A stretch of DNA of 64,000 bases from positions 1 through 64,000 of the IMG/VR virus record IMGVR_UViG_3300047472_000309; one strand, 5' to 3'. Under the pieces are notes generated by a model that saw only the letters and a list, made by a program, of their open reading frames with translations, was not told the DNA's origin and did not search any database. This document shows, piece after piece, positions 9,632-45,965 of this stretch (position 1 is its first letter; the number at the start of each line of letters is the position of its first letter). The position numbers were made by a program, and so were the translations under genes.

Positions 9632-9670
9632 CGGCATAAGGCCCGAGGGTTTCCCTCGGGCTCTATGACG
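9632..9670. repeat. CGGCATA-hairpin-TATGACG intergenic palindrome (probable bidirectional terminator)
   Basis: CGGCATAAGGCCCGAGGGTTTCCCTCGGGCTCTATGACG between convergent genes. Confidence 0.8.
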
Positions 9671-12326: not shown

Positions 12327-12389
12327 TTTGTTTTACTCCTTGTCGACCTACATGATCAAGGCGCCCAATAAAAACGAATCGACGGCATA

Positions 12390-12846
12390 AAAAGGAAAAA
12401 AGGGCGAGGAGCGGTTTCGGGCCGCCACCTCGCCTAAATACAGGTCGTTACAAGTACCGAAAAGGAAAACCAGTCACTGAACATGCCCGAGCGATTCGGA
12501 GCCACAGAGACTCTACTACCACTACCACTTCAACCAAAATCGAGGTAGACAGGGGCCAGCTTACTCTTAATCCACGCGATCGACCAACTTCCACAGGAGA
12601 CTCCTATATTCGCCAAAGAGCGCTTGCGGAGGCGCAGAGCAGCGATAGGAGTAGGATCGATGTACGAGGAAACGCCGGTGCCAGGGGAAACAAGGAGGAA
12701 ACCCCAGCAGCGTGAATAAGCCAGCCCCGCGTCTAGGCATACGGCGCGGTAGCCCGCGGGAGGGCTCGCGCGAGAGTCCTTACCGGCACCAGTCAGGAGG
12801 AGGCCTGATGTCGATGAGGGTACAGGCTTGCCGGGCCTTTCTCTTC
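12390..12846 (+). ncRNA. Candidate structured RNA with GGA-rich loops
   Basis: No ORF of 60 aa or more. At least six stems whose mismatches are G-U on the + strand; about 16 GGA versus 4 TCC; ends in hairpin plus TTTCTCTT. Confidence 0.55.
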
Positions 12847-13328: not shown

Positions 13329-13730
13329 TCAGAAGGGCAGGTGATCCAAAATCACGTCGTCACCGAGAAACTGGTGGACGTAGTACGGGAAGCCGTAGCC
13401 GCTACCGGCTGCTCCTGTACGTAGCCCACGCAGCCCCTCGAGACGCGCGTACACACTCTGTGCCAGATTTTGAACCGCTGCCCGCAATCGCTGATACTCG
13501 CTAGACGCCGTGTTTTCATAAACCGGGTCTACTATACGATTGGTAATGGGCAGCGCCTCAAGTCGGGCGGGACCGTTCGCTGAATAGTCCAAAAACACTT
13601 CGAAGATCTGCGTGAGGATTTCGCGCTTATCGTTGAAGTGAATAGGCAAACCTTGCACTTCAAACAGAAACTGCGCCCAGAGATCCGCGGTCTCAAAGAT
13701 CATGAGTCTGCTGTAATGCTCGTTTGCCAT
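13329..13730 (-). CDS. Hypothetical protein, tandem paralogue 7
   Basis: Start MANEHY; C-terminal FPYYVHQFLGDDVIL. Confidence 0.7.
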   Translation of the reverse strand: MANEHYSRLMIFETADLWAQFLFEVQGLPIHFNDKREILTQIFEVFLDYSANGPARLEALPITNRIVDPVYENTASSEYQRLRAAVQNLAQSVYARLEGLRGLRTGAAGSGYGFPYYVHQFLGDDVILDHLPF

Positions 13731-13737
13731 GGTCGAT

Positions 13738-14220
13738 TCACAGGTTAGGGATATGGTCAGCGTGCAGGTGGCGCAGCACCATGTCACGGCCAAGCCAGTC
13801 GTGGAACTGATAGTACAGGTAGCCGTTCTGGTAGGCGCGCATCAGCCGTAGCTTCTGGAGCACCGACTCACCAAACTTATTGATGAGGCCCGCCAGGCGC
13901 GTAAACGACTCTTCGCCGCTCGTGCCTAACTGTTCCTGAAACAGATCGACACAGGCAAAGTTCAGCTCATGCAGCGCCTGCTTCTCGTAGTGGATTGACT
14001 CCATCACGATCTGCGCGACCATGTCCATCACGGTGTGGGGGAACTTATCCACCACCATGATGGGGGTCGTGGCGGTAGCAATTAACGAATCCAACTCGCG
14101 CGCCTTCCACAGCAGCGCCGCCATGTCAGAGTCGGTATCCAGAACCAAAAAGGTCGAAGGGGGCTGGCTGTGGACCGAACTCCTCAAAATCGGCCTTGGC
14201 AAACCGGACAAGATGGTCAC
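13738..14220 (-). CDS. Hypothetical protein, tandem paralogue 6
   Basis: GTG 14220 preceded by GGAGG at 6-nt spacing; C-terminal YLYYQFHDWLGRDMVL. Confidence 0.65.
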   Translation of the reverse strand: MTILSGLPRPILRSSVHSQPPSTFLVLDTDSDMAALLWKARELDSLIATATTPIMVVDKFPHTVMDMVAQIVMESIHYEKQALHELNFACVDLFQEQLGTSGEESFTRLAGLINKFGESVLQKLRLMRAYQNGYLYYQFHDWLGRDMVLRHLHADHIPNL

Positions 14221-14581
14221 TGTGGACCTCCGCAAAATGATAGGGAAAATAGCCGTCAGGCGGCAGATAAGCGTTGTACTCAAAGCGCAACCGATCTCGC
14301 ATGGCGAGCCCCATCTTCATCACCGCTTCAAACATATCGCGATGAGGACCACGGGGAATATCGGCTTCCTCGATGCGGAACTCCTGGTAGCCGCAGTCGT
14401 ACGCCAGTACGATCGCCACTTCCGTAAGCTCAGACTCTGCACAATCATACACGCTAATTGCCGAGAACACGCTCGCCAGCACTTCGTTCAAATCAAAGGG
14501 CGGACGAAAAGGCTGGGTCGCCACGCGCAGAAACCCATGGATCTCTTGCGTGAAGTCGATCAATAGGTTTTCAGTATACAC
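14126..14581 (-). CDS. Hypothetical protein, tandem paralogue 5
   Basis: GTG start overlapping the upstream stop; YFPYHFAEVHSDHLV. Confidence 0.65.
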   Translation of the reverse strand: MYTENLLIDFTQEIHGFLRVATQPFRPPFDLNEVLASVFSAISVYDCAESELTEVAIVLAYDCGYQEFRIEEADIPRGPHRDMFEAVMKMGLAMRDRLRFEYNAYLPPDGYFPYHFAEVHSDHLVRFAKADFEEFGPQPAPFDLFGSGYRL

Positions 14582-15056
14582 GGCGTTTTCCCCAATTACT
14601 GGTGAGGACCTCGATGCCCACCACCAGATCTCGACCGATCCAGCGCGGACTTTGGTCGTCGATGTGGTAAGGTCGGCTGCTAAAGAGATCTTGCATGATG
14701 AGCAGTACTTGCTCTTCAATGGACTGCGTGATCATCTCGAGCTCACCCACGCGGCTCATGTATTCGCTTAAATCCACGGACGTATGTTTAATACGGCCCG
14801 TGCGCTCATCGAACTGTTCATGACGCCGGTTCACGTAACTGTCAAACTTCTTCAACACGAAATCCACCAGCTCACTGTGATGATGTTGCAGCGAGCGCTG
14901 GTACTCAGTGTACGGCGAGGTTTCCTGAAACGACGTGCCCAAGACGGCATTCTTCACGACGGAATGCACCCCGCCCCTCAGAAAGAGCTTGAACAACTCA
15001 TCGTACACCATGGATTCCGTGATCAAATCACACGTCGGCAATATGAAAACGGACAT
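14571..15056 (-). CDS. Hypothetical protein, tandem paralogue 4
   Basis: Start MSVFILP with AAACAAGGA RBS; PYHI...WIGRDLVV. Confidence 0.7.
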   Translation of the reverse strand: MSVFILPTCDLITESMVYDELFKLFLRGGVHSVVKNAVLGTSFQETSPYTEYQRSLQHHHSELVDFVLKKFDSYVNRRHEQFDERTGRIKHTSVDLSEYMSRVGELEMITQSIEEQVLLIMQDLFSSRPYHIDDQSPRWIGRDLVVGIEVLTSNWGKRRVY

Positions 15057-15094
15057 GGTTGCTATTCCTTGTTTCGATTGTAATGACCTGTTAC

Positions 15095-15538
15095 TTACAG
15101 TCTCACGGGCTCGTACACAGGATCGACGGGGCGGGCACGAAACTCCGTGACCACCACATCCCATGCGCCAGTAAGATCAGCGTACGCCTCTGTGGACGTA
15201 TCGCTTAACTTCAAGTGCGGCAACACCGCGCCGATGTAATCGACGATCATGTCAAACGCACGGTTACACAACTGGTGCGCAGCGTTATGGTTCATGCCTG
15301 AGTTCTGCAACAGGGCTTTAGCTGTGACCAGGTATTCAGAAGGATGCTCTTCGCAGGTGTTGTCAAACACGTCCTTGAGCAAAGCTTCCAGGAGCGGGCC
15401 ACTATCGTAGCTTCTCCAGTTCGGATCAAGTGCTGCTTCCGGATTGCGTGGGTTACGCTTGCGTGCTTGATACAGAGCCAGCTCGCGTTGCACGAACATG
15501 CCCACATCCAGCAGCGAAATCACCGTACTGCTTCTCAT
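15095..15538 (-). CDS. Hypothetical protein, tandem paralogue 3
   Basis: 147-aa ORF in the same-strand array. Confidence 0.7.
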   Translation of the reverse strand: MRSSTVISLLDVGMFVQRELALYQARKRNPRNPEAALDPNWRSYDSGPLLEALLKDVFDNTCEEHPSEYLVTAKALLQNSGMNHNAAHQLCNRAFDMIVDYIGAVLPHLKLSDTSTEAYADLTGAWDVVVTEFRARPVDPVYEPVRL

Positions 15539-15563
15539 CTACTCATCCCCGACACGCGCTCTG

Positions 15564-16373
15564 TTAATCTTCAAAATCGCGTCCGTGCTCCATCATCCAC
15601 GAGTAGATCCGATAGTCGATGGTCTTTTCCACCCGCACCGTCGTATTATCCACTTTCATGAAGTGCATGATCCAGCGATCTTGTCCCAAGAAGTCTGTCA
15701 ACTGATGTAGCATGTCGCTTAACTGCAGCGTGATGCTCTCACAGATCTCCTGAGAGGCGTAAAAAAGTTGCTTGTCCTGTTCCGTGATCCGCGAACGGCC
15801 CAGCTCATCAGTCGGTTCGTGCTCGAGCGCGATGATGTTGCCAGTCTCGCCCCAGGTGAATTTGGGATCAGTGGGATCTTTCGGATACTGGAATACCGAA
15901 TCGACCGTGATGCCGGAGCGCTGAAACTGCTCGAGCAGAAACGGCCGGATCACCGCATCAAAATTCAGCTTCTTGTGGCCACGACGAATGCGACCCTGAC
16001 TGGACCATTTTGCATGGTTGATCACCATGTGGTCAATCAGCTCGACGAGCAAGTTACGAGCACGCAGCGAATAGCGTGACTGCGGCTTCAGATACGGCAA
16101 GTGGACTTTGGGGACCACGAGATTGGCTTCCGCGTCGAACACCTCATCGCGCAGCGGCAATTCGAACGAGGTGATCGGAATCGGCACCGCCACACTCTTG
16201 ACTGCTTCACCTGCGTAGAAATACGGCTGCCCTGCGATCATCACCGGCTCACACTGAGTCGGCAGGTACAAGCCTTCCGGATTGGGCAACATGTAGGGAC
16301 CTGCGGCAGCTTCCACCGCGTCGACCCAGTCTCCCAGATCCAGCACCAGCGTTCCAGTGATTTTCAGTTCCAT
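15564..16373 (-). CDS. Hypothetical protein, tandem paralogue 2 (long form)
   Basis: Start MELKITG overlapping the upstream gene end. Confidence 0.7.
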   Translation of the reverse strand: MELKITGTLVLDLGDWVDAVEAAAGPYMLPNPEGLYLPTQCEPVMIAGQPYFYAGEAVKSVAVPIPITSFELPLRDEVFDAEANLVVPKVHLPYLKPQSRYSLRARNLLVELIDHMVINHAKWSSQGRIRRGHKKLNFDAVIRPFLLEQFQRSGITVDSVFQYPKDPTDPKFTWGETGNIIALEHEPTDELGRSRITEQDKQLFYASQEICESITLQLSDMLHQLTDFLGQDRWIMHFMKVDNTTVRVEKTIDYRIYSWMMEHGRDFED

Positions 16374-16771
16374 TTTCTTTGGTAGTCGTAGTTCGTATTG
16401 GCAGGACGATTGTGGATGTAGTACCACAAGTACAGATCAATCCCGCGGATTTCTAAATCGATGAAGCAGTTATCCCCGTACAACTGCGGCACCTTGATGT
16501 ACTGGCCCGTGTAGTAATCCAGATCCAACTGTGAACGGATCTGGTCATGCAGTCGGGCAAAGCGCCAATCCCGCGGATCGTGGTTCACAGAGAACAAATG
16601 ATACACCTGCTCAATCTGTTCTTTCACGATCCATTCGATCAAGCGCTCTTCGCTTAACCCGGAGAAGACCAGTTGACTCGCAACGGCCCTCGTAGCGCCC
16701 TTTAAGACGCTCAGGAAGTCATGGATCTCCTGGATCAATAGCGCCCTAGGTTCGACGGTTAAGAGGTTCAT
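16364..16771 (-). CDS. Hypothetical protein, tandem paralogue 1
   Basis: 135-aa ORF with AAGGAG RBS. Confidence 0.75.
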   Translation of the reverse strand: MNLLTVEPRALLIQEIHDFLSVLKGATRAVASQLVFSGLSEERLIEWIVKEQIEQVYHLFSVNHDPRDWRFARLHDQIRSQLDLDYYTGQYIKVPQLYGDNCFIDLEIRGIDLYLWYYIHNRPANTNYDYQRKWN

Positions 16772-16837
16772 GGCGGCTCCTTATACACAGTATCCAGCGG
16801 CTACGTTTGTTTTGACTATTTGTGTAACTGCGGCATA

Positions 16838-17246
16838 AAAAAATAATCAGTCCCTTTTGCACCCTCCTACTGGAAGGCATAAAAGGGACTCACCTCGTCC
16901 GATGCTCACCCAAACAGCGACCCGTAAAACGGACTGTGGGATTGTTGCGATCGGAACTGAGGTGGTCTGGACATCTCAAGATGCGAGCCAAGAGTTAGGC
17001 CCTATCGCTCATCCTTACCACGACCCATGGGTCTAGTAAACGATTGCCTCGGGTACTCCCTTGAAAACTGTCGCACTTATTGCCTCCTGCTCACCGGGGG
17101 TGGCAGGCCATTACTCACGGAATGTAAAAGACTGCCTAGCCCCTAAATGCACCCCCTGCGCCTGATGCGCGGTTCGGCTGGTATGGGACTAAGAGTCTGC
17201 GCATGGCCAAATCATCGGTCCGAATCAACGGGCCAAGCGCATCGCC
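16838..17246 (-). ncRNA. Candidate structured RNA or long 3' trailer downstream of phuZ
   Basis: No ORF of 60 aa or more. Consecutive long helices, then an AGTCCCTTTT/AAAAGGGACT hairpin and U-run on the - strand. Confidence 0.45.
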
Positions 17247-17471
17247 TCAATGGCTGAAGGTACTACGAGCACCCTTAGCTCGCGTTGCCTTCCCCAGCTG
17301 GGGACGTCGCGCATGATGTCTATTCACCCGAGCTTGCGCCAGCCGAGGTGAGGACCGATGAACTTTGCGATTGGCGGCCGCTTGGAGGGAAGGGAACCAT
17401 GAAAAATCATGGTAGAGCCACTTCATCTCCCGCAGCCACCATCGAGCCAGGTTTCTCACATGGCTAAACAT
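17247..17471 (-). CDS. Small basic hypothetical protein
   Basis: 74 aa, AAGGA upstream, directly after phuZ. Confidence 0.45.
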   Translation of the reverse strand: MFSHVRNLARWWLREMKWLYHDFSWFPSLQAAANRKVHRSSPRLAQARVNRHHARRPQLGKATRAKGARSTFSH

Positions 17472-17514
17472 CGGTTCTTATTGCTTTCCTTATCGTGTTT
17501 GCTGCGTTCTTGTT

Positions 17515-18519
17515 TTAGAGGATCAGCCCCGTTTCATCCGCACGGTCGCCTGCGCCCAAAATGGACTTGTGCGCGACGCGCGATTGCTGTTCCTCGCTCA
17601 GGTGCGTGAGCACCCGTTGCACGTTGTCCACGGCTTCGTGGATCACCCGGTCGCCCGTGATGTAATGCACCGGCGATTCCTTGGCGATGTTCTCGGGCAT
17701 GTCAGCCGGGAACAGACCCAGAAAGCGCACTTCCGGCATGAACGGCAGCGTTGCATCGGCACCCGCTTTCGCCAGCGTCGCGACGCTGATGACGTTGCCC
17801 ACGTGAGCGTGCGATTCGCCGTTCTTGACGATGTGCAATCCAGCGAGCATCGGCTGCTTGAAGGTGGTGACCTTGTCGAAGCGCAACCAGTTGTAGAGGT
17901 CACGCGTGTCGAGCTCGGTGTTCTCGCGGCTAAAGAGCGCAGCGAGGCCGACCACGACGGTTTCGATTTCAGCGTCCACCGCCGCACGCGGCGTGTCTTG
18001 CGTGTTCTGCAAATACGCGATGACGATCGGTGCACCCGCGGCCTTGGCGATGGCTTCGTAGGACTTGATCGTGTTGAGCGTGTTCTCCGCGTACAGACGC
18101 GTCGACGCATCACCCACCATGACCACAACCACCGGCACATCACGTGCGAGCAGCTCTTGCGTGAGGATCGGGCCGATCACCGAACCCGAACCGCCCGAGG
18201 CCGAATGCATCACCAGCGCCAGGTTGCCCGGCTTGTACGTGTGCAAGATTTCCTTGGCACGTTCTTTCACGACGGCAGCGTGTTCGCGACGCACTTGTCC
18301 AGCGCCATCGAGGCCCTGGAAGTGGTACACCGCATCGGCTGCGATGTCGGCGCTGAGTATGTTGGACTTGGAGGTGTCGATATAAACCGGATCGACGATC
18401 GCCATGCCTGCCTGACTCTTGCCGCGGTACTTCTCAAAGCGCGTCGCAATGTTCGTGCCAGCTCCGCCCGCTGCGTAGATGCTGATACGACCTTTGACTT
18501 TCTCGATGATTTCGGACAT
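17515..18519 (-). CDS. phuZ: PhuZ tubulin-like GTPase (phage spindle)
   Basis: GGAGTNI, IDTS, GAG and SGGSGS tubulin/FtsZ signatures; acidic-hydrophobic C-terminal knuckle DETGLIL. Confidence 0.96.
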   Translation of the reverse strand: MSEIIEKVKGRISIYAAGGAGTNIATRFEKYRGKSQAGMAIVDPVYIDTSKSNILSADIAADAVYHFQGLDGAGQVRREHAAVVKERAKEILHTYKPGNLALVMHSASGGSGSVIGPILTQELLARDVPVVVVMVGDASTRLYAENTLNTIKSYEAIAKAAGAPIVIAYLQNTQDTPRAAVDAEIETVVVGLAALFSRENTELDTRDLYNWLRFDKVTTFKQPMLAGLHIVKNGESHAHVGNVISVATLAKAGADATLPFMPEVRFLGLFPADMPENIAKESPVHYITGDRVIHEAVDNVQRVLTHLSEEQQSRVAHKSILGAGDRADETGLIL

Positions 18520-18602
18520 GTTTCTTTCCTAGTTTTTCAAAATGAAGCACTCCTACATAGTAGGGGATGTGCTCGTAAAAAATGCCTGGCGAAGCAGGCA
18601 CC

Positions 18603-19013
18603 TTAAACTGCGGCCAGGTGACCGTTGATGACCGCTTCGGTGATGATGGTGGTCGACATCGGCTTGTCTTCAGCGATGAAGAACTCTTCGAACTTCGATT
18701 CGTGGAAGTGCATTTCCAACGGCACGAGTTCGGTCGAGTTACGTTCCTTGGCGTTCAGGTACTCCATCACCTTGCGCTTGGAACCGGCCCACAGGACACC
18801 TGCTTCCAACTCGCCCTTGAACGTCTTGTGAGCGCCATCAGCCATCGAAGCACGGAAGCCTTCGACGATAAAGTCACCCAGCGCGTTTTGGCTCACGCGG
18901 TACAGGATGGTAGCGCCATTGCTGGACACTTCATCCATTGCATAGTGCTTGTTCATGTACACAAGAGCAGCCAGGTTAGCTGCGTAAGCCTTGATGTTAG
19001 CAACGTTGTTCAT
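18603..19013 (-). CDS. Early hypothetical protein
   Basis: Start MNNVAN with AGGAG RBS, below an early promoter. Confidence 0.75.
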   Translation of the reverse strand: MNNVANIKAYAANLAALVYMNKHYAMDEVSSNGATILYRVSQNALGDFIVEGFRASMADGAHKTFKGELEAGVLWAGSKRKVMEYLNAKERNSTELVPLEMHFHESKFEEFFIAEDKPMSTTIITEAVINGHLAAV

Positions 19014-19079
19014 GGTAATGCTCCTGAGAATAGACGAGATAGAATAGGTTGTCGAAGCTTCTTGCTTCAACTCAAGGAC

Positions 19080-19108
19080 GTAATATAGGTCTGAAATTGT
19101 TTTCAATC
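19080..19108 (-). promoter_or_regulatory. Early promoter
   Basis: GATTGAAAACAATTTCAGACCTATATTAC on the - strand. Confidence 0.8.
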
Positions 19109-19158
19109 GACTTTTAACACGCGATCCTATGTAGATTCTTTTTTAGCGGAGGCCAAGA

Positions 19159-19962
19159 GTGAATCCTATCACCCGAGCTGTGGATGATCTGAAGTTCAGG
19201 ATTCCACGGCGTGTATTGGAAGAGGTGTTTGTCGAGCGCACGGCCCGTTGGCGTACTGCCCCGCGCTCGATCGACGAGTGTATTTTGGAACAAGTGGTGC
19301 GCCCCCGTGTGCTGGTGGACTGTAACCTGGTGGGTGGCACCGAAGCGTTTGTGTATCTGGATGATATTCCGTACGAACGCATGAACGACTACACGTCGGT
19401 GTATCGCATCCCCAAGACCAAGACGCAGGGTCGCTCGATTCTGTCGGTGCTGAACATCACATTCGCTGACCCGACGAAAGTCTCGAGCTACGGGATTGCC
19501 GCAGGCGCGCAGAACACCACGATGCTGCAAGCCGGTCAGGCTGTGATGGATGCTTACGGTGCCTTGCCCGTGACCTCCACCCATCGCGTGCAGTTGATCG
19601 GGGAAAACACCATCATGGTGCGCGATACCATCGTGCTGCCGCCGGACGTGTATCTGCGTTGTATTCTGGCTAACGACGAGAACATGTCGCATATCCAGAT
19701 GCGCAGCTATCGGCCTTTCTGTCGGCTGGTGGAACTCGCGGTGAAAGCCTACATCTACAATGACCAAGTCATCGAGATGGACATCGGCAAGATTCGTGGC
19801 GGTCAGGAAATCGGTAAGTTCAAGGAAATCGTCGAGGAGTACAAGGACGCGGAAGAACAGTATCAGGAGTTCTTGGCGACCACCTGGCAGAAGGTGGCGT
19901 ATATGAACGACAATGAGACGTTCAACCGATTTGTCAGGTCCCTGATTGGCGGCTACCGGTAA
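19159..19962 (+). CDS. Conserved phiKZ-like protein (gp42-like, tentative)
   Basis: 267 aa, GGAGG RBS, GTG start, upstream TATG. Confidence 0.75.
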   Translation: MNPITRAVDDLKFRIPRRVLEEVFVERTARWRTAPRSIDECILEQVVRPRVLVDCNLVGGTEAFVYLDDIPYERMNDYTSVYRIPKTKTQGRSILSVLNITFADPTKVSSYGIAAGAQNTTMLQAGQAVMDAYGALPVTSTHRVQLIGENTIMVRDTIVLPPDVYLRCILANDENMSHIQMRSYRPFCRLVELAVKAYIYNDQVIEMDIGKIRGGQEIGKFKEIVEEYKDAEEQYQEFLATTWQKVAYMNDNETFNRFVRSLIGGYR

Positions 19963-19964
19963 CA

Positions 19965-20002
19965 CGGTCATAGCGGGCAGCCCCAGGGCTGCCCGTATGC
20001 CG
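19965..20002. repeat. CATA-hairpin-TATGCCG intergenic palindrome
   Basis: CGGTCATAGCGGGCAGCCCCAGGGCTGCCCGTATGCCG between convergent genes. Confidence 0.75.
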
Positions 20003-20012
20003 CTGTAGCGGC

Positions 20013-20612
20013 TTATGCGGCGTTGCGCAACTGGAGCTTCACGAAGGTTCCGGCCGCGGCTTCCTGGCCCTTAGCGAAGTCTACGAGACCCTTGGTGAGT
20101 GGCATGATGGTGAGCGTGAAACCTACGCCGTTCTCGTCGACCTTGAACACACAGGTGTTGGAGAGCTGGGAGACGAGGTTACGCATTTGGCTGAAGGCCG
20201 ACGCGTAGTCGAAGTCGATCCCAGCCGCTTTCTGCCAGCGCTTGCCGAATTCCTTCTTGGCAGCTTTTTCCAGACGCGGGTAGATGGCTTTGGCGTTCAC
20301 GTAGGTGCCTGCGTCTTCACCCATCTCGATCGTGACCTTCATCACGAGCTGATCGTCAACGTTCACCCGATAGCCTTCCAGCCGTCGGTACATGCCCTGA
20401 TGGGAGCCCGCGTCGAACACGAAGTCGGTCGCCAGCGCCGGATGGGCGCCCAATTCACGCACAGTACGACGCACGAGACGCATCACCGGTTGCTCGTCAG
20501 CGCTGTAGAGCGAATTGATGTGGTTTTCGATAAACCCTTCATCTGCGTTGGTCGCTTCGAAATTCTTGAAGTCGTAGTTGGCGAAGAAGAAGGAAAGAGC
20601 TTTGTGGTTCAT
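20013..20612 (-). CDS. Hypothetical protein
   Basis: 199-aa ORF with good codon bias. Confidence 0.8.
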   Translation of the reverse strand: MNHKALSFFFANYDFKNFEATNADEGFIENHINSLYSADEQPVMRLVRRTVRELGAHPALATDFVFDAGSHQGMYRRLEGYRVNVDDQLVMKVTIEMGEDAGTYVNAKAIYPRLEKAAKKEFGKRWQKAAGIDFDYASAFSQMRNLVSQLSNTCVFKVDENGVGFTLTIMPLTKGLVDFAKGQEAAAGTFVKLQLRNAA

Positions 20613-20670
20613 GTGAATCTCAGTGGTCTGTGTGGTACTTGGGCAAACCTGGCGTCGCCCCTGGTGTTTA

Positions 20671-21230: not shown

Positions 21231-21314
21231 GCGGGTAGGTTGGGAAAATAAGAAGGGTCTCTCGTCCCCCTCTCATGTAATTTAGGTATCCCGACATACC
21301 AAAAAAGCATCACG

Positions 21315-21503
21315 TCATTTTTGTTTTGCAGGGGGCACTGGAGCGTCCACTTGACCAGGCCATTTCACCACACTGAGCTCTTTATTCTCATGCCGGGGGG
21401 CTTCCGGATACAGGGCATGCAGATTGTACAGGCAGTCCTTGTTAAAGAACGCACCCAGATGCCCGTGCGGGAGTTCCACCAGTGCCACTTCCTTTTTTGC
21501 CAT
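21315..21503 (-). CDS. Small hypothetical protein
   Basis: Start MAKKEVAL, below a terminator. Confidence 0.55.
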   Translation of the reverse strand: MAKKEVALVELPHGHLGAFFNKDCLYNLHALYPEAPRHENKELSVVKWPGQVDAPVPPAKQK

Positions 21504-21525
21504 CACAAACCTAAGAGAAAAGACC

Positions 21526-21567
21526 AAAAAAAAAGACTGAAAAAGAGAGGCCCCGAAGGGCCCCCTT
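21526..21567 (-). terminator. Intrinsic terminator
   Basis: GGCCCCGAAGGGCC hairpin with A-runs on the + strand. Confidence 0.6.
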
Positions 21568-21605
21568 AAACTCACCCCTCAGGCGAGGGGCAAGGGAGTT
21601 TTCGG

Positions 21606-21800
21606 TTAGCGCGGCAGATCCGCTTCGACCTCAATCATACCGGCCAGACGATACAGGAGCGTGGCGGCATGATTGGTGGAGCTCGCCGCGGCTGAGATTT
21701 CCTGGAAGGTCGGCTTATCGTCCAATGAGGCGAGAATATGCAGCGCTTGTTCCAGGCCGCTTTTAATCTCCTTCATCATGAGCTGCTTATTACGCGCCAT
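21606..21800 (-). CDS. Small hypothetical protein
   Basis: Start MARNKQL overlapping the upstream stop. Confidence 0.6.
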   Translation of the reverse strand: MARNKQLMMKEIKSGLEQALHILASLDDKPTFQEISAAASSTNHAATLLYRLAGMIEVEADLPR

Positions 21801-23852: not shown

Positions 23853-23879
23853 CACGTCACTCCGGCATAAAGGCCTGGG

Positions 23880-24156: not shown

Positions 24157-24185
24157 AGAATATAGGTTTGAATATTTCTAGCATC
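24157..24185 (-). promoter_or_regulatory. Early promoter (TATATTCT variant)
   Basis: GATGCTAGAAATATTCAAACCTATATTCT on the - strand. Confidence 0.7.
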
Positions 24186-24203
24186 CACGGATCGACGGCA
24201 TAA

Positions 24204-24798
24204 ACGCCAGGCTCTCTGCCCGGCGAGGAAGATCACTTTGTAATTAAATATTCTATTCTTACAGAGTATGACTCCAGGGAGTATTCCTTTCTAGGGAATA
24301 ATAAAGAGAGGGGCTCCGCCCCTCTCTACGCTTAATTCTCTTCCTCCGCTTCGCTCCGCGTCGCCTCCGCTCCTTGACACATATCTAAGTTCCTACACAG
24401 TATTTTTTTACTTTATGCTTATAAATCAAGTACTTAGCTTCTAAACCCGATATTAACATATCGGGAGAGGGGCTTAGTCCCCCTCTCCCTTTTTTAAAAA
24501 GTTTAGACCGGGGTTTGTCAACCTAGAGAGTGAGCGCGTAGCGCTAGGGAAAGGAACAAAGGCACGAGCGCAGCGACAGAGATGTTTGGATAGGTATTGG
24601 ATGGTATTGTTGATGAATGACACCGCATGGTCGAAAACCCGCCCAGCGTTGCAAACCATTCTTAGGGGCGCGGCGGGCGGCGGCTTTTTATCGTGTTCCC
24701 CTATCTTGTTATGCACCGCGCGCAGCAGGATCTTTTATCCTGTAGATAGCAATACTGTGAATCTCCAATTCCGTTCCTACTCCCTAAGGAAAGAACCC
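24204..24798. other. AT-rich, palindrome-dense non-coding region at a strand switch (possible replication origin)
   Basis: No credible ORF; several GC hairpins within AT-rich DNA; GAGCGAAGCG and GAGCGCAGCG motifs. Confidence 0.4.
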
Positions 24799-25875: not shown

Positions 25876-25978
25876 TCTCATCCCTGGAACGGATGGTGTA
25901 AACGGCGGGGCTTCGGCCCCGCCTTTATGCCGTTGATCCTAATTCTGTGTATCGTTGCCCTATCTGAGAGGATGCTAA

Positions 25979-44362: not shown

Positions 44363-44418
44363 ATGCGGATCAACGGCATAAGCCCCAGGGTTTCCCCTGG
44401 GGCTCGCTTACGGTGGTG

Positions 44419-45239: not shown

Positions 45240-45965
45240 TTATGCTCGCAAGAGAGACTCGATGCGCTCCACGCGATCCGCCGGATTCACGAGAGCAGAC
45301 ACCAGAGCATCTCCAAAGTACGACCCGGCGAGCTTGTTGGTCGTATTGGTCGCTGCGTACTGCACTGAGCGCAGCGGAATGAACGCAGGCTTCACGACGC
45401 TTAGCTGGGAGAGGTCTTCGATCGTGGTCCGGTAATACTGGTTGCGATCTTTCTCCGAGCGCGAGATCATCGAAATGATCAGCTCCGTGACTTCCTGGTT
45501 GGCCCCGATGTTGGCTCCGGCATGATACAGCGCCGTGTCGAAGATTTTCCCGAGCTCCAGATAGCCCAAGTACCAAGGTACCCGACCCTTCGAGATGATC
45601 TCGTCGTAGATTTTGTACACCAACACGTCGGTCTTCACCAGATCCGTGCTTGTGACCACGACGCTACCCGCATCGAAGCTGAACTCGTAATACTCATCCC
45701 CGTCGATTTGTATCTTCAGGGTCGCCGTCGGTTCGATGGGCAACATGGCATTCACCATGGAGACGCCATAGTACACATCCTCTACGACAATCGCATAGAT
45801 TCCCACAATGTAGGTTTCAATGCCGATCTGAGCGAGGCCTCGTTCTGCGAAGCGCGCCGGAATATAGATCTTCACCGGTTTCTTGCAGACGAGGCTCCCA
45901 TTTGGAAGTTCTTCGAGGTAAGCCTGGACCCGTTTGGGATCGCGAATGAGTTTACTCACGTCCAT
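45240..45965 (-). CDS. Conserved protein (phiKZ gp176-like)
   Basis: 241 aa; synteny between protease and vRNAP. Confidence 0.75.
   Translation of the reverse strand: MDVSKLIRDPKRVQAYLEELPNGSLVCKKPVKIYIPARFAERGLAQIGIETYIVGIYAIVVEDVYYGVSMVNAMLPIEPTATLKIQIDGDEYYEFSFDAGSVVVTSTDLVKTDVLVYKIYDEIISKGRVPWYLGYLELGKIFDTALYHAGANIGANQEVTELIISMISRSEKDRNQYYRTTIEDLSQLSVVKPAFIPLRSVQYAATNTTNKLAGSYFGDALVSALVNPADRVERIESLLRA

Follow-up and report, generated by a model that had tools for sequence, protein, structure and literature searches.

Structured RNAs longer than 500 nt that contain pseudoknots are rare; historically they have proved to be ribozymes or the cores of ribonucleoproteins, recently also RNA-only cages, and each new family of such large RNAs has opened new RNA biology. 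RNAIII of Staphylococcus aureus, a structured RNA of about 500 nt, is a dual-function molecule whose small ORF lies close to the 5' end. The 'ornate large' RNAs GOLLD and ROOL are often carried by phages or prophages, and have been seen by cryo-EM to form RNA-only cages (bioRxiv 10.1101/2024.12.08.627333). Introns are known in jumbo phages (PMC13282480), and a 2026 review describes both their presence in these phages and the expression of non-coding RNAs by phiKZ.

We describe here a segment of about 530 nt downstream of a phuZ gene that is best read, from the comparison of homologous loci, as a family of large pseudoknotted RNAs with several domains, not described before and present only in FLC9-like, phuZ-encoding jumbo phages of soil and rhizosphere. 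No description of such an RNA was found in the published literature that we searched. The phages that carry it are probably nucleus-forming, and RNA-level functions in this group are almost unexplored.

Genome setting of the element

The window (the whole stretch of DNA analysed, 64,000 nucleotides) is the first 64 kb of an IMG/VR record that constitutes a complete genome of 310,654 bp with direct terminal repeats. The initial annotation of the window had proposed a large structured non-coding segment at 16838–17246, read on the minus strand and lying downstream of phuZ. The locus is composed as follows.

17515–18519, minus strand: phuZ, 334 aa, upstream of the element, identified by Pfam and tblastn
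17247–17471, minus strand: small ORF of 74 codons plus stop, with its ATG at 17471 and its stop abutting the segment as initially annotated
17467–17484, minus strand: translation-initiation region of the small ORF, in which 13 bases around the ATG show no variation among the nine homologues
16838–17366, minus strand: the conserved structured RNA in full (about 530 nt, 25 helices), defined by nine-sequence alignment, RNAalifold, pair counts and z-scores
16831–16848, minus strand: U-run followed by a TTATGCCG box (box at 16831–16838), just 3' of helix 25
16364–16771, minus strand: 135-aa ORF, the next gene 3' of the element

Pfam and tblastn comparisons identify the gene 5' of the element as encoding a PhuZ-type tubulin. 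Its product matches TubZ_C_2 with 29.1 bits (cut-off 27) and Tubulin with 30.6 bits (just below the cut-off of 33), and tblastn gives matches in 209 phage records, many of them annotated as PhuZ; the segment was therefore correctly placed downstream of phuZ. An ORF-poor gap of 743 nt (16772–17514) separates phuZ from the 135-aa ORF. Burkholderia phage FLC9 (321.8 kb, host B. glumae), the only cultured relative in the phage collection, has an equivalent gap of 770 nt between gp10 and gp11 that carries no annotation, and is 70% identical to the window across 1.5 kb around the element. None of the nine neighbouring minus-strand ORFs (135–287 aa, 13700–20650) has a match in PHROGs, Pfam likewise gives nothing for the three scanned against it (135, 167 and 287 aa), and the early-region block of the FLC9 clade (13700–20650 of the window, minus strand) is entirely uncharacterised.

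Other ORF-poor gaps occur in the window. Two of about 400 nt are located at 21231–21672, where folding is no better than in shuffles (z = -1.2), and at 24185–24585. A third, of 500 nt at 12327–12827 (minus strand), is 77% identical to the gap between FLC9 gp2 and gp3 (L001:159–694), has a fold z-score of -2.28, ends in a hairpin and a TTATGCCG box, and is unrelated in sequence to the post-phuZ element. The initial annotation had counted the post-phuZ segment as the second of its kind, and 12327–12827 is probably the one it counted as first.

Distribution and conservation

Nine distinct versions of the element were assembled, from the window, L003, L005, L006, L007, L008 and L017 (IMG/VR), L020 (a metagenome) and FLC9. 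They were drawn from IMG/VR pattern scans together with a PhuZ-guided scan, one metagenome scan and the phage collection; L004 is identical to the window, L017 and L023 are one contig, and neither duplicate is counted among the nine. Three more IMG/VR pattern scans returned the same 7 contigs, a pattern scan of genome contigs gave 0 matches, and the metagenome pattern scan gave one true match (L020), with L021 and L022 being chance matches within a lipase-like gene. No paralogue was found in the same genome with nhmmer. About 20 studies of soil and rhizosphere metagenomes contain DNA related to the element.

The nearest other phuZ phages, RP12, RTH11 and RSL2, have PhuZ proteins just 33–39% identical, lack the element, and have merely 125–240 nt following phuZ. 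A covariance model of the core, R1, finds no match in these three genomes, nor in the IMG/VR contigs L018 and L019; the PhuZ proteins of the two IMG/VR contigs scanned with R1 are 41–43% identical. Because the nearest phuZ phages outside the clade are without it, the element is an insertion specific to one narrow clade. Within that clade, DNA identities of the window to its relatives are as follows.

17140–17366: RNA core, 86% to FLC9 and 89% to L006
phuZ DNA: 69% to FLC9 and 68% to L006
Downstream gene: 63% to FLC9 and 64% to L006

Likewise, 76–90% of columns are invariant in each 50-column bin from 17370 to 17165, as against 50–80% in phuZ, and by these measures the core is kept well above its flanking genes. 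The element is also a mosaic, with two versions of the N-terminal part of the small ORF (17346–17471) and two of a variable hairpin (16891–16964) that combine independently of phuZ similarity, as seen in L005, L006, L017, L020 and FLC9; L005, for example, is 94% identical in phuZ and 72% in the ORF part. This pattern suggests recombination within the element among FLC9-like phages, and part of the conservation could therefore reflect recent exchange.

A compensated fold on the minus strand

The 409 nt initially annotated have a minimum free energy z-score of -3.48 on the minus strand and -1.94 on the plus strand. A 535-nt version gives -4.35 and the FLC9 homologue -4.62, with none of 100 shuffles as good in either case. 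RNAalifold, run with seven and with nine sequences, recovers 36 pairs that are kept through changes on both sides. For the final model, both strands of a candidate pseudoknot and the 3' tail were barred from nested pairing in a constrained alifold run and the pseudoknot was added by hand, giving 149 pairs in 25 helices, which were then counted over the nine sequences. Standard pairs occupy 97.4% of the pair cells (91.7% in shuffles) and the covariation score is 0.234 (0.123 in shuffles). There are 37 pairs in which both partners have changed, compared with 18.5 +/- 2.4 in shuffles; none of 500 shuffles reaches 37, and when partners are slid by 1–3 columns just 2–9 such pairs are seen. Compensatory pairs in excess of both shuffled and slid controls are the generic mark of a functional structured RNA. 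With compensatory pairs kept in relatives and an energy below that of every shuffle, the proposal of a large structured segment stands, and the comparisons show that minus-strand RNA from about 17366 to 16838 folds into some 25 helices held by compensatory changes. The 5' limit of the proposed segment needs correction: the conserved fold begins at about 17366, roughly 120 nt further upstream.

The cells of the model include 125 G-U and 12 A-C, and 97.4% pair when read on the minus strand, compared with 88.1% if read on the plus strand; the fold therefore belongs to minus-strand RNA, and not to the plus strand or to DNA. This imbalance bears on the reading of the locus as protein-coding (a missed, frameshifted or plus-strand gene) or as a site acting at the level of DNA, such as a replication origin or packaging site. 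The 74-codon frame, open in all nine homologues, and the presence of short plus-strand ORFs of 59 and 60 aa are in keeping with a coding function. Against these stand the lack of codon periodicity between 17350 and 16840, whichever phase is read, substitutions in the tail of the ORF that are compensatory in the RNA and non-conservative in the protein, and the failure of our searches to find protein relatives; the excess of G-U cells argues for single-stranded RNA of the minus strand and against a DNA-level function. We consider the coding and DNA-level readings highly improbable, and regard the segment as a real folded RNA of about 530 nt that is under strong constraint.

Helices and domains

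The principal elements of the fold, in 5' to 3' order on the minus strand apart from the two pseudoknot strands, which are given together, are listed here.

17352–17361, minus strand: 5' strand of the predicted pseudoknot (helix 1), invariant, within codons 37–40 of the small ORF
17212–17221, minus strand: 3' strand of the predicted pseudoknot, invariant, in the 21-nt loop of helix 9
17324–17351, minus strand: helix 2, a hairpin with an invariant GGCGC loop; 7 of 10 pairs double-changed, 96.7% paired
17256–17292, minus strand: helices 6 and 7, an invariant outer stem with a covarying inner hairpin and a conserved loop
17198–17241, minus strand: helix 9 (17231–17241 with 17198–17208), which carries the pseudoknot loop
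17134–17194, minus strand: helices 10–12, a nested stem that encloses a hairpin, with long unpaired stretches that are invariant
17086–17107, minus strand: helix 14, a hairpin, 100% paired with one double change
16977–17079, minus strand: helices 15–20, a multi-branch domain with a long-range, covarying closing helix
16891–16964, minus strand: helices 21–24, a variable long hairpin
16849–16890, minus strand: helix 25, a terminal hairpin of 18 pairs and the likely 3' end of the RNA

Helices 2, 7, 15, 19 and 21–24 are the best supported. In helix 7 four of the six pairs are double-changed and 100% of cells are paired; five of 11 pairs in helix 15 and all four in helix 19 are double-changed, and the domain formed by helices 15–20 has a variable tip into which FLC9 has inserted 22 nt. 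Four stems had been pointed out in the initial annotation, and all four are found at the claimed places when read on the minus strand, with compensatory changes preserving the pairing in relatives for three of them. The TGCGC-TGGCC/GGCCA-GCGCA hairpin is helix 9, 98.9% paired in the nine homologues with one pair double-changed and four single-changed, and a further compensating change in L020 can be read from the alignment. The stem AGACT..TAGTCCC/GGGGCTA..AGTCT corresponds to helix 10 (17185–17194 with 17134–17143) and is 90.9% paired; G-U pairs occur in it. The long CACCTC...GAGGTG hairpin is accounted for by helices 21–24, in which seven of 14 pairs are double-changed, and which exist as two sequence versions of the same shape with only 36–41% identity between them. 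The fourth, a terminal 10-bp stem with a U-run, is present as helix 25 (98.8% paired, one double change), differing from its description in having 18 pairs, not 10, and a U-run that lies 5 nt beyond the stem.

The two pseudoknot strands, 17352–17361 and 17212–17221, are complementary at 10 of 10 positions in all nine sequences with zero variation, and the duplex has a calculated energy of -20.3 kcal/mol. The 10-bp pseudoknot stays a prediction of the model because neither strand ever varies. Many unpaired bases are likewise invariant, and two invariant loops contain the self-complementary sequence GCGC, the one lead towards possible homo-oligomers joined by loop-loop contacts. The alignment has only nine sequences, from about six lineages within a single narrow clade, and for that reason neither the invariant core nor the pseudoknot carries covariation.

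A small ORF runs into the fold

The 5' part of the element as now delimited sits within the tail of the 74-codon ORF, and for this reason the element is not purely non-coding. This ORF is called by no gene caller and is listed in no database, and its product has no relatives in Pfam, PHROGs, a word search or the Atlas. Its frame is open in all nine homologues (74–81 aa), which include an in-frame indel of 3 nt, and in L017 the stop is shifted seven codons downstream. Variable columns at the three codon positions number 15/9/29 in codons 1–42 and 8/12/10 in codons 43–74; codon periodicity stops near 17351 and is absent downstream in every phase. Codons 1 to about 42 thus evolve as protein, and the tail is shaped by RNA pairing, since substitutions there are compensatory in the stems and non-conservative in the peptide. 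Structure within the 5' part of the ORF has a weak signal, with four of 34 pairs compensated. As expected of a dual-function RNA, a small ORF that appears to be under protein-level selection lies inside the putative transcript.

The start of the ORF has a poor Shine-Dalgarno signal. Nine of ten bases of the pseudoknot 5' strand can pair with the start region at 17467–17484 (as read by eye; duplex energy -11.2 kcal/mol), and the pseudoknot 3' strand with its flanks resembles that start region. A speculative switch can be drawn in which the strand at 17352–17361 would pair with either the ORF start (-11 kcal/mol) or the helix-9 loop (-20 kcal/mol), and ribosomes translating the ORF would have to unwind helices 1–8. 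On this speculative view, translation of the ORF and folding of the core would be mutually exclusive and may be coupled. A ribosome that reached the stop codon would disrupt the fold over its 5' third, which sits uneasily with a stable RNA acting in trans only.

These relationships bear on the reading of the element as cis-acting, either as a long structured 3' UTR with a role in stabilising or localising the message of phuZ and the small ORF, or as a translational operator of the small ORF in which start region, anti-start strand and helix-9 loop form the switch. The coding-type evolution of the ORF, the invariance of its start, the complementarity of the start to the pseudoknot strand and its likeness to the helix-9 loop all speak for a cis-acting element. 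The switch itself draws no support from covariation, as the three complementary strands never vary. Some 25 helices, a 10-bp pseudoknot and long invariant runs far exceed what known stabilisers or operators need, and the core is better conserved than the ORF that it would regulate. We hold a cis-acting role to be rather unlikely; further evidence on both sides comes from the putative transcription unit and the RNA-library contigs.

Two further readings of the 5' part were rejected. A -1 or +1 frameshift site ahead of the pseudoknot is not indicated, as there is no slippery heptamer and both other frames stop within 15 codons. A tmRNA-like reading of the GGGGCUGAU motif 5' of the element, at the end of phuZ, is a coincidence.

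Proposed transcription unit and RNA-library contigs

The region 3' of helix 25, 16831–16848, is probably a termination zone together with a promoter-like box for the 135-aa gene. The 310-kb genome has 35 sites at which TTATGCCG directly follows a GC-rich hairpin, compared with about 5 copies of the bare 8-mer expected by chance. Minus-strand sites include 16831–16838, 12383–12390, 9632–9639, 23863–23870, 24196–24203 and 44374–44381, there is a plus-strand site at 25925–25932, and 28 further sites are found in the genome. The combination looks like a terminator joined to a TATG promoter box of phiKZ type, serving as punctuation along the genome; the TATG core of TTATGCCG resembles the late promoters of the phiKZ-type phage RNA polymerase. 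Helix 25 is strong and conserved and fits this pattern, and departs from a canonical intrinsic terminator in the spacing of its U-run, which begins 5 nt after the stem; a simple terminator scan does not call it for that reason. A second motif, TATATT[AC][CT], is present 19 times on the minus strand of the genome and once on the plus strand, with window copies on the minus strand at 45866, 44341, 24164, 23831, 19087 and 5135. Several copies are about 40 nt downstream of a TTATGCCG box, and the motif may belong to early promoters comparable to those of phiKZ.

Upstream of phuZ there is a hairpin with a T-run and a TATG-containing box. No hairpin with a TTATGCCG box is found between phuZ and the element, and one lies directly after the element. 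With no promoter-like box in between, phuZ, the small ORF and the RNA would form one transcription unit ending at helix 25, an arrangement that also suits a cis-acting element of the phuZ message.

Two rhizosphere metatranscriptome runs from different studies, both picked for sharing words with the kilobase of the element, were mapped to 15000–19500 at 80% likeness. Each yielded one whole-length match, at 17116–17337 and 17045–17220, about 95–97% alike, these being contigs that carry neither strand nor end information; the remaining matches of both runs are 35-nt fragments of unrelated contigs. DNA runs mapped alongside cover 15000–19500 evenly. The RNA-library contigs cover the core, and neither phuZ nor the 5' part of the ORF, and are colinear with the DNA. 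Their restriction to the core is a hint of a stable, abundant core RNA, with DNA carry-over also possible, and tells against a cis-acting element of the phuZ message.

Our leading model is that the element is a stable trans-acting RNA or a ribonucleoprotein scaffold derived from the tail of the phuZ transcript, a guess that we rate as evenly poised between right and wrong. The RNA would be transcribed together with phuZ and the small ORF, the transcript would end at the 18-pair hairpin just before the TTATGCCG box of the next gene, and the folded RNA would then persist and act in trans. Candidate roles would be as a scaffold for phage or host proteins, as a self-assembling 'ornate' RNA, or as a ribozyme. 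A more elaborate version, in which a new catalytic or self-assembling RNA machine, peculiar to jumbo phages that form a nucleus and working for example as a ribozyme or as an RNA or RNP assembly, serves the biology of the phage nucleus or the spindle era and its folding is gated by translation of the small ORF, seems to us quite doubtful.

Known RNA classes and intron-like readings

No family in Rfam 15 (4227 models, among them GOLLD, ROOL, HEARO, OLE, raiA, RNase P, tmRNA, 6S, group I and II introns and small ribozymes) matches the 64-kb window or four homologue loci at gathering score, in agreement with the initial annotation, which could assign the segment to no tRNA, tmRNA, RNase P or intron family. 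At E <= 10, searches of the window and these four loci return only chance-level lncRNA, miRNA and sRNA models, outside or across the core. ARAGORN detects no tRNA or tmRNA in the 64-kb window. A CsrA/RsmA sponge was rejected, as the sole good GGA site is in a non-conserved tip. The best antisense matches to targets in the phage genome are 12–14 nt, at chance level.

The size of the element, its pseudoknot and its invariant junction bases also suit a ribozyme, whether an intron-like mobile insertion that splices or cleaves itself or a new catalytic RNA, situated in the FLC9 clade between phuZ and the gene that follows. The element is an insertion relative to the short post-phuZ regions of RP12, RTH11 and RSL2, coding-type evolution breaks off near codon 42, much as it would where an exon meets an intron, and introns occur in other jumbo phages. 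No group I, group II or small-ribozyme family in Rfam matches even at E <= 10, and the complete 310-kb genome has no reverse transcriptase (PF00078), which was matched in control genomes; on these grounds a group II intron, a retron and a DRT-type non-coding RNA were rejected. A group I intron was rejected as there is no second exon: codon periodicity is not resumed after it ends near 17351, and the RNA-library contigs show no departure from colinearity. Nor would an intron split the small ORF and the 135-aa gene, which has its own RBS and an in-frame stop four codons upstream. The genes that follow phuZ in RP12, RTH11 and RSL2 have no similarity to the 135-aa protein, and so provide no evidence of an exon.

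A group I core was considered in particular for helix 3, a long-range candidate that pairs 17315–17320 with 16970–16975, was picked by constrained alifold and holds in eight sequences. Elements resembling the group I R/S pair, with this helix as P7, are attractive by eye, and the assignment is uncertain, L017 fitting poorly: there helix 3 loses two of its six pairs, to the benefit of a local hairpin. Helices 1 and 3 are about 100 nt apart and in the wrong order for a P3–P7 core, which was rejected. Taken with the points above, we judge a ribozyme very unlikely, and a stable trans-acting RNA remains our leading model.

Comparison with known systems

The element is more strictly conserved than the surrounding genes, which themselves look essential, and because FLC9 is in culture it is directly accessible to experiment. 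In some respects it resembles the introns of phages, in others the ends of transcription units, and in others dual-function and 'ornate' RNAs. Like phage group I introns, it is large, combines long-range pairings with a pseudoknot, is present or absent as an insertion, and has an upstream reading frame running into it; unlike them, it has no match to RF00028, no second exon, a helix order unlike P3–P7 and an intergenic location. Like intrinsic terminators and RNAs derived from 3' UTRs, it has a strong end hairpin with U residues at the 3' end of a putative transcription unit, although the U-run is 5 nt off the stem and termination would not explain the approximately 480 nt of conserved fold upstream.

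The parallel with RNAIII is one of organisation, in that one transcript of the element could yield both a peptide and a folded RNA. The two are unrelated in sequence, no antisense target above chance is found in the phage genome, and the ORF of the element enters the conserved fold, whereas that of RNAIII occupies a separate segment.

In architecture the element compares with GOLLD and ROOL, which are likewise phage-borne and pseudoknotted, exceed 500 nt with many helices, and have highly conserved unpaired bases and GC-rich self-complementary loops (here the two invariant GCGC loops). It differs from them in having no Rfam match to either family even at E <= 10, in overlapping a small ORF, and in not being located beside tRNA genes, there being no tRNA in the window. 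We read the element as a new sequence family among the large 'ornate' phage RNAs, unusual in having a small ORF that continues into the fold together with a predicted invariant pseudoknot.
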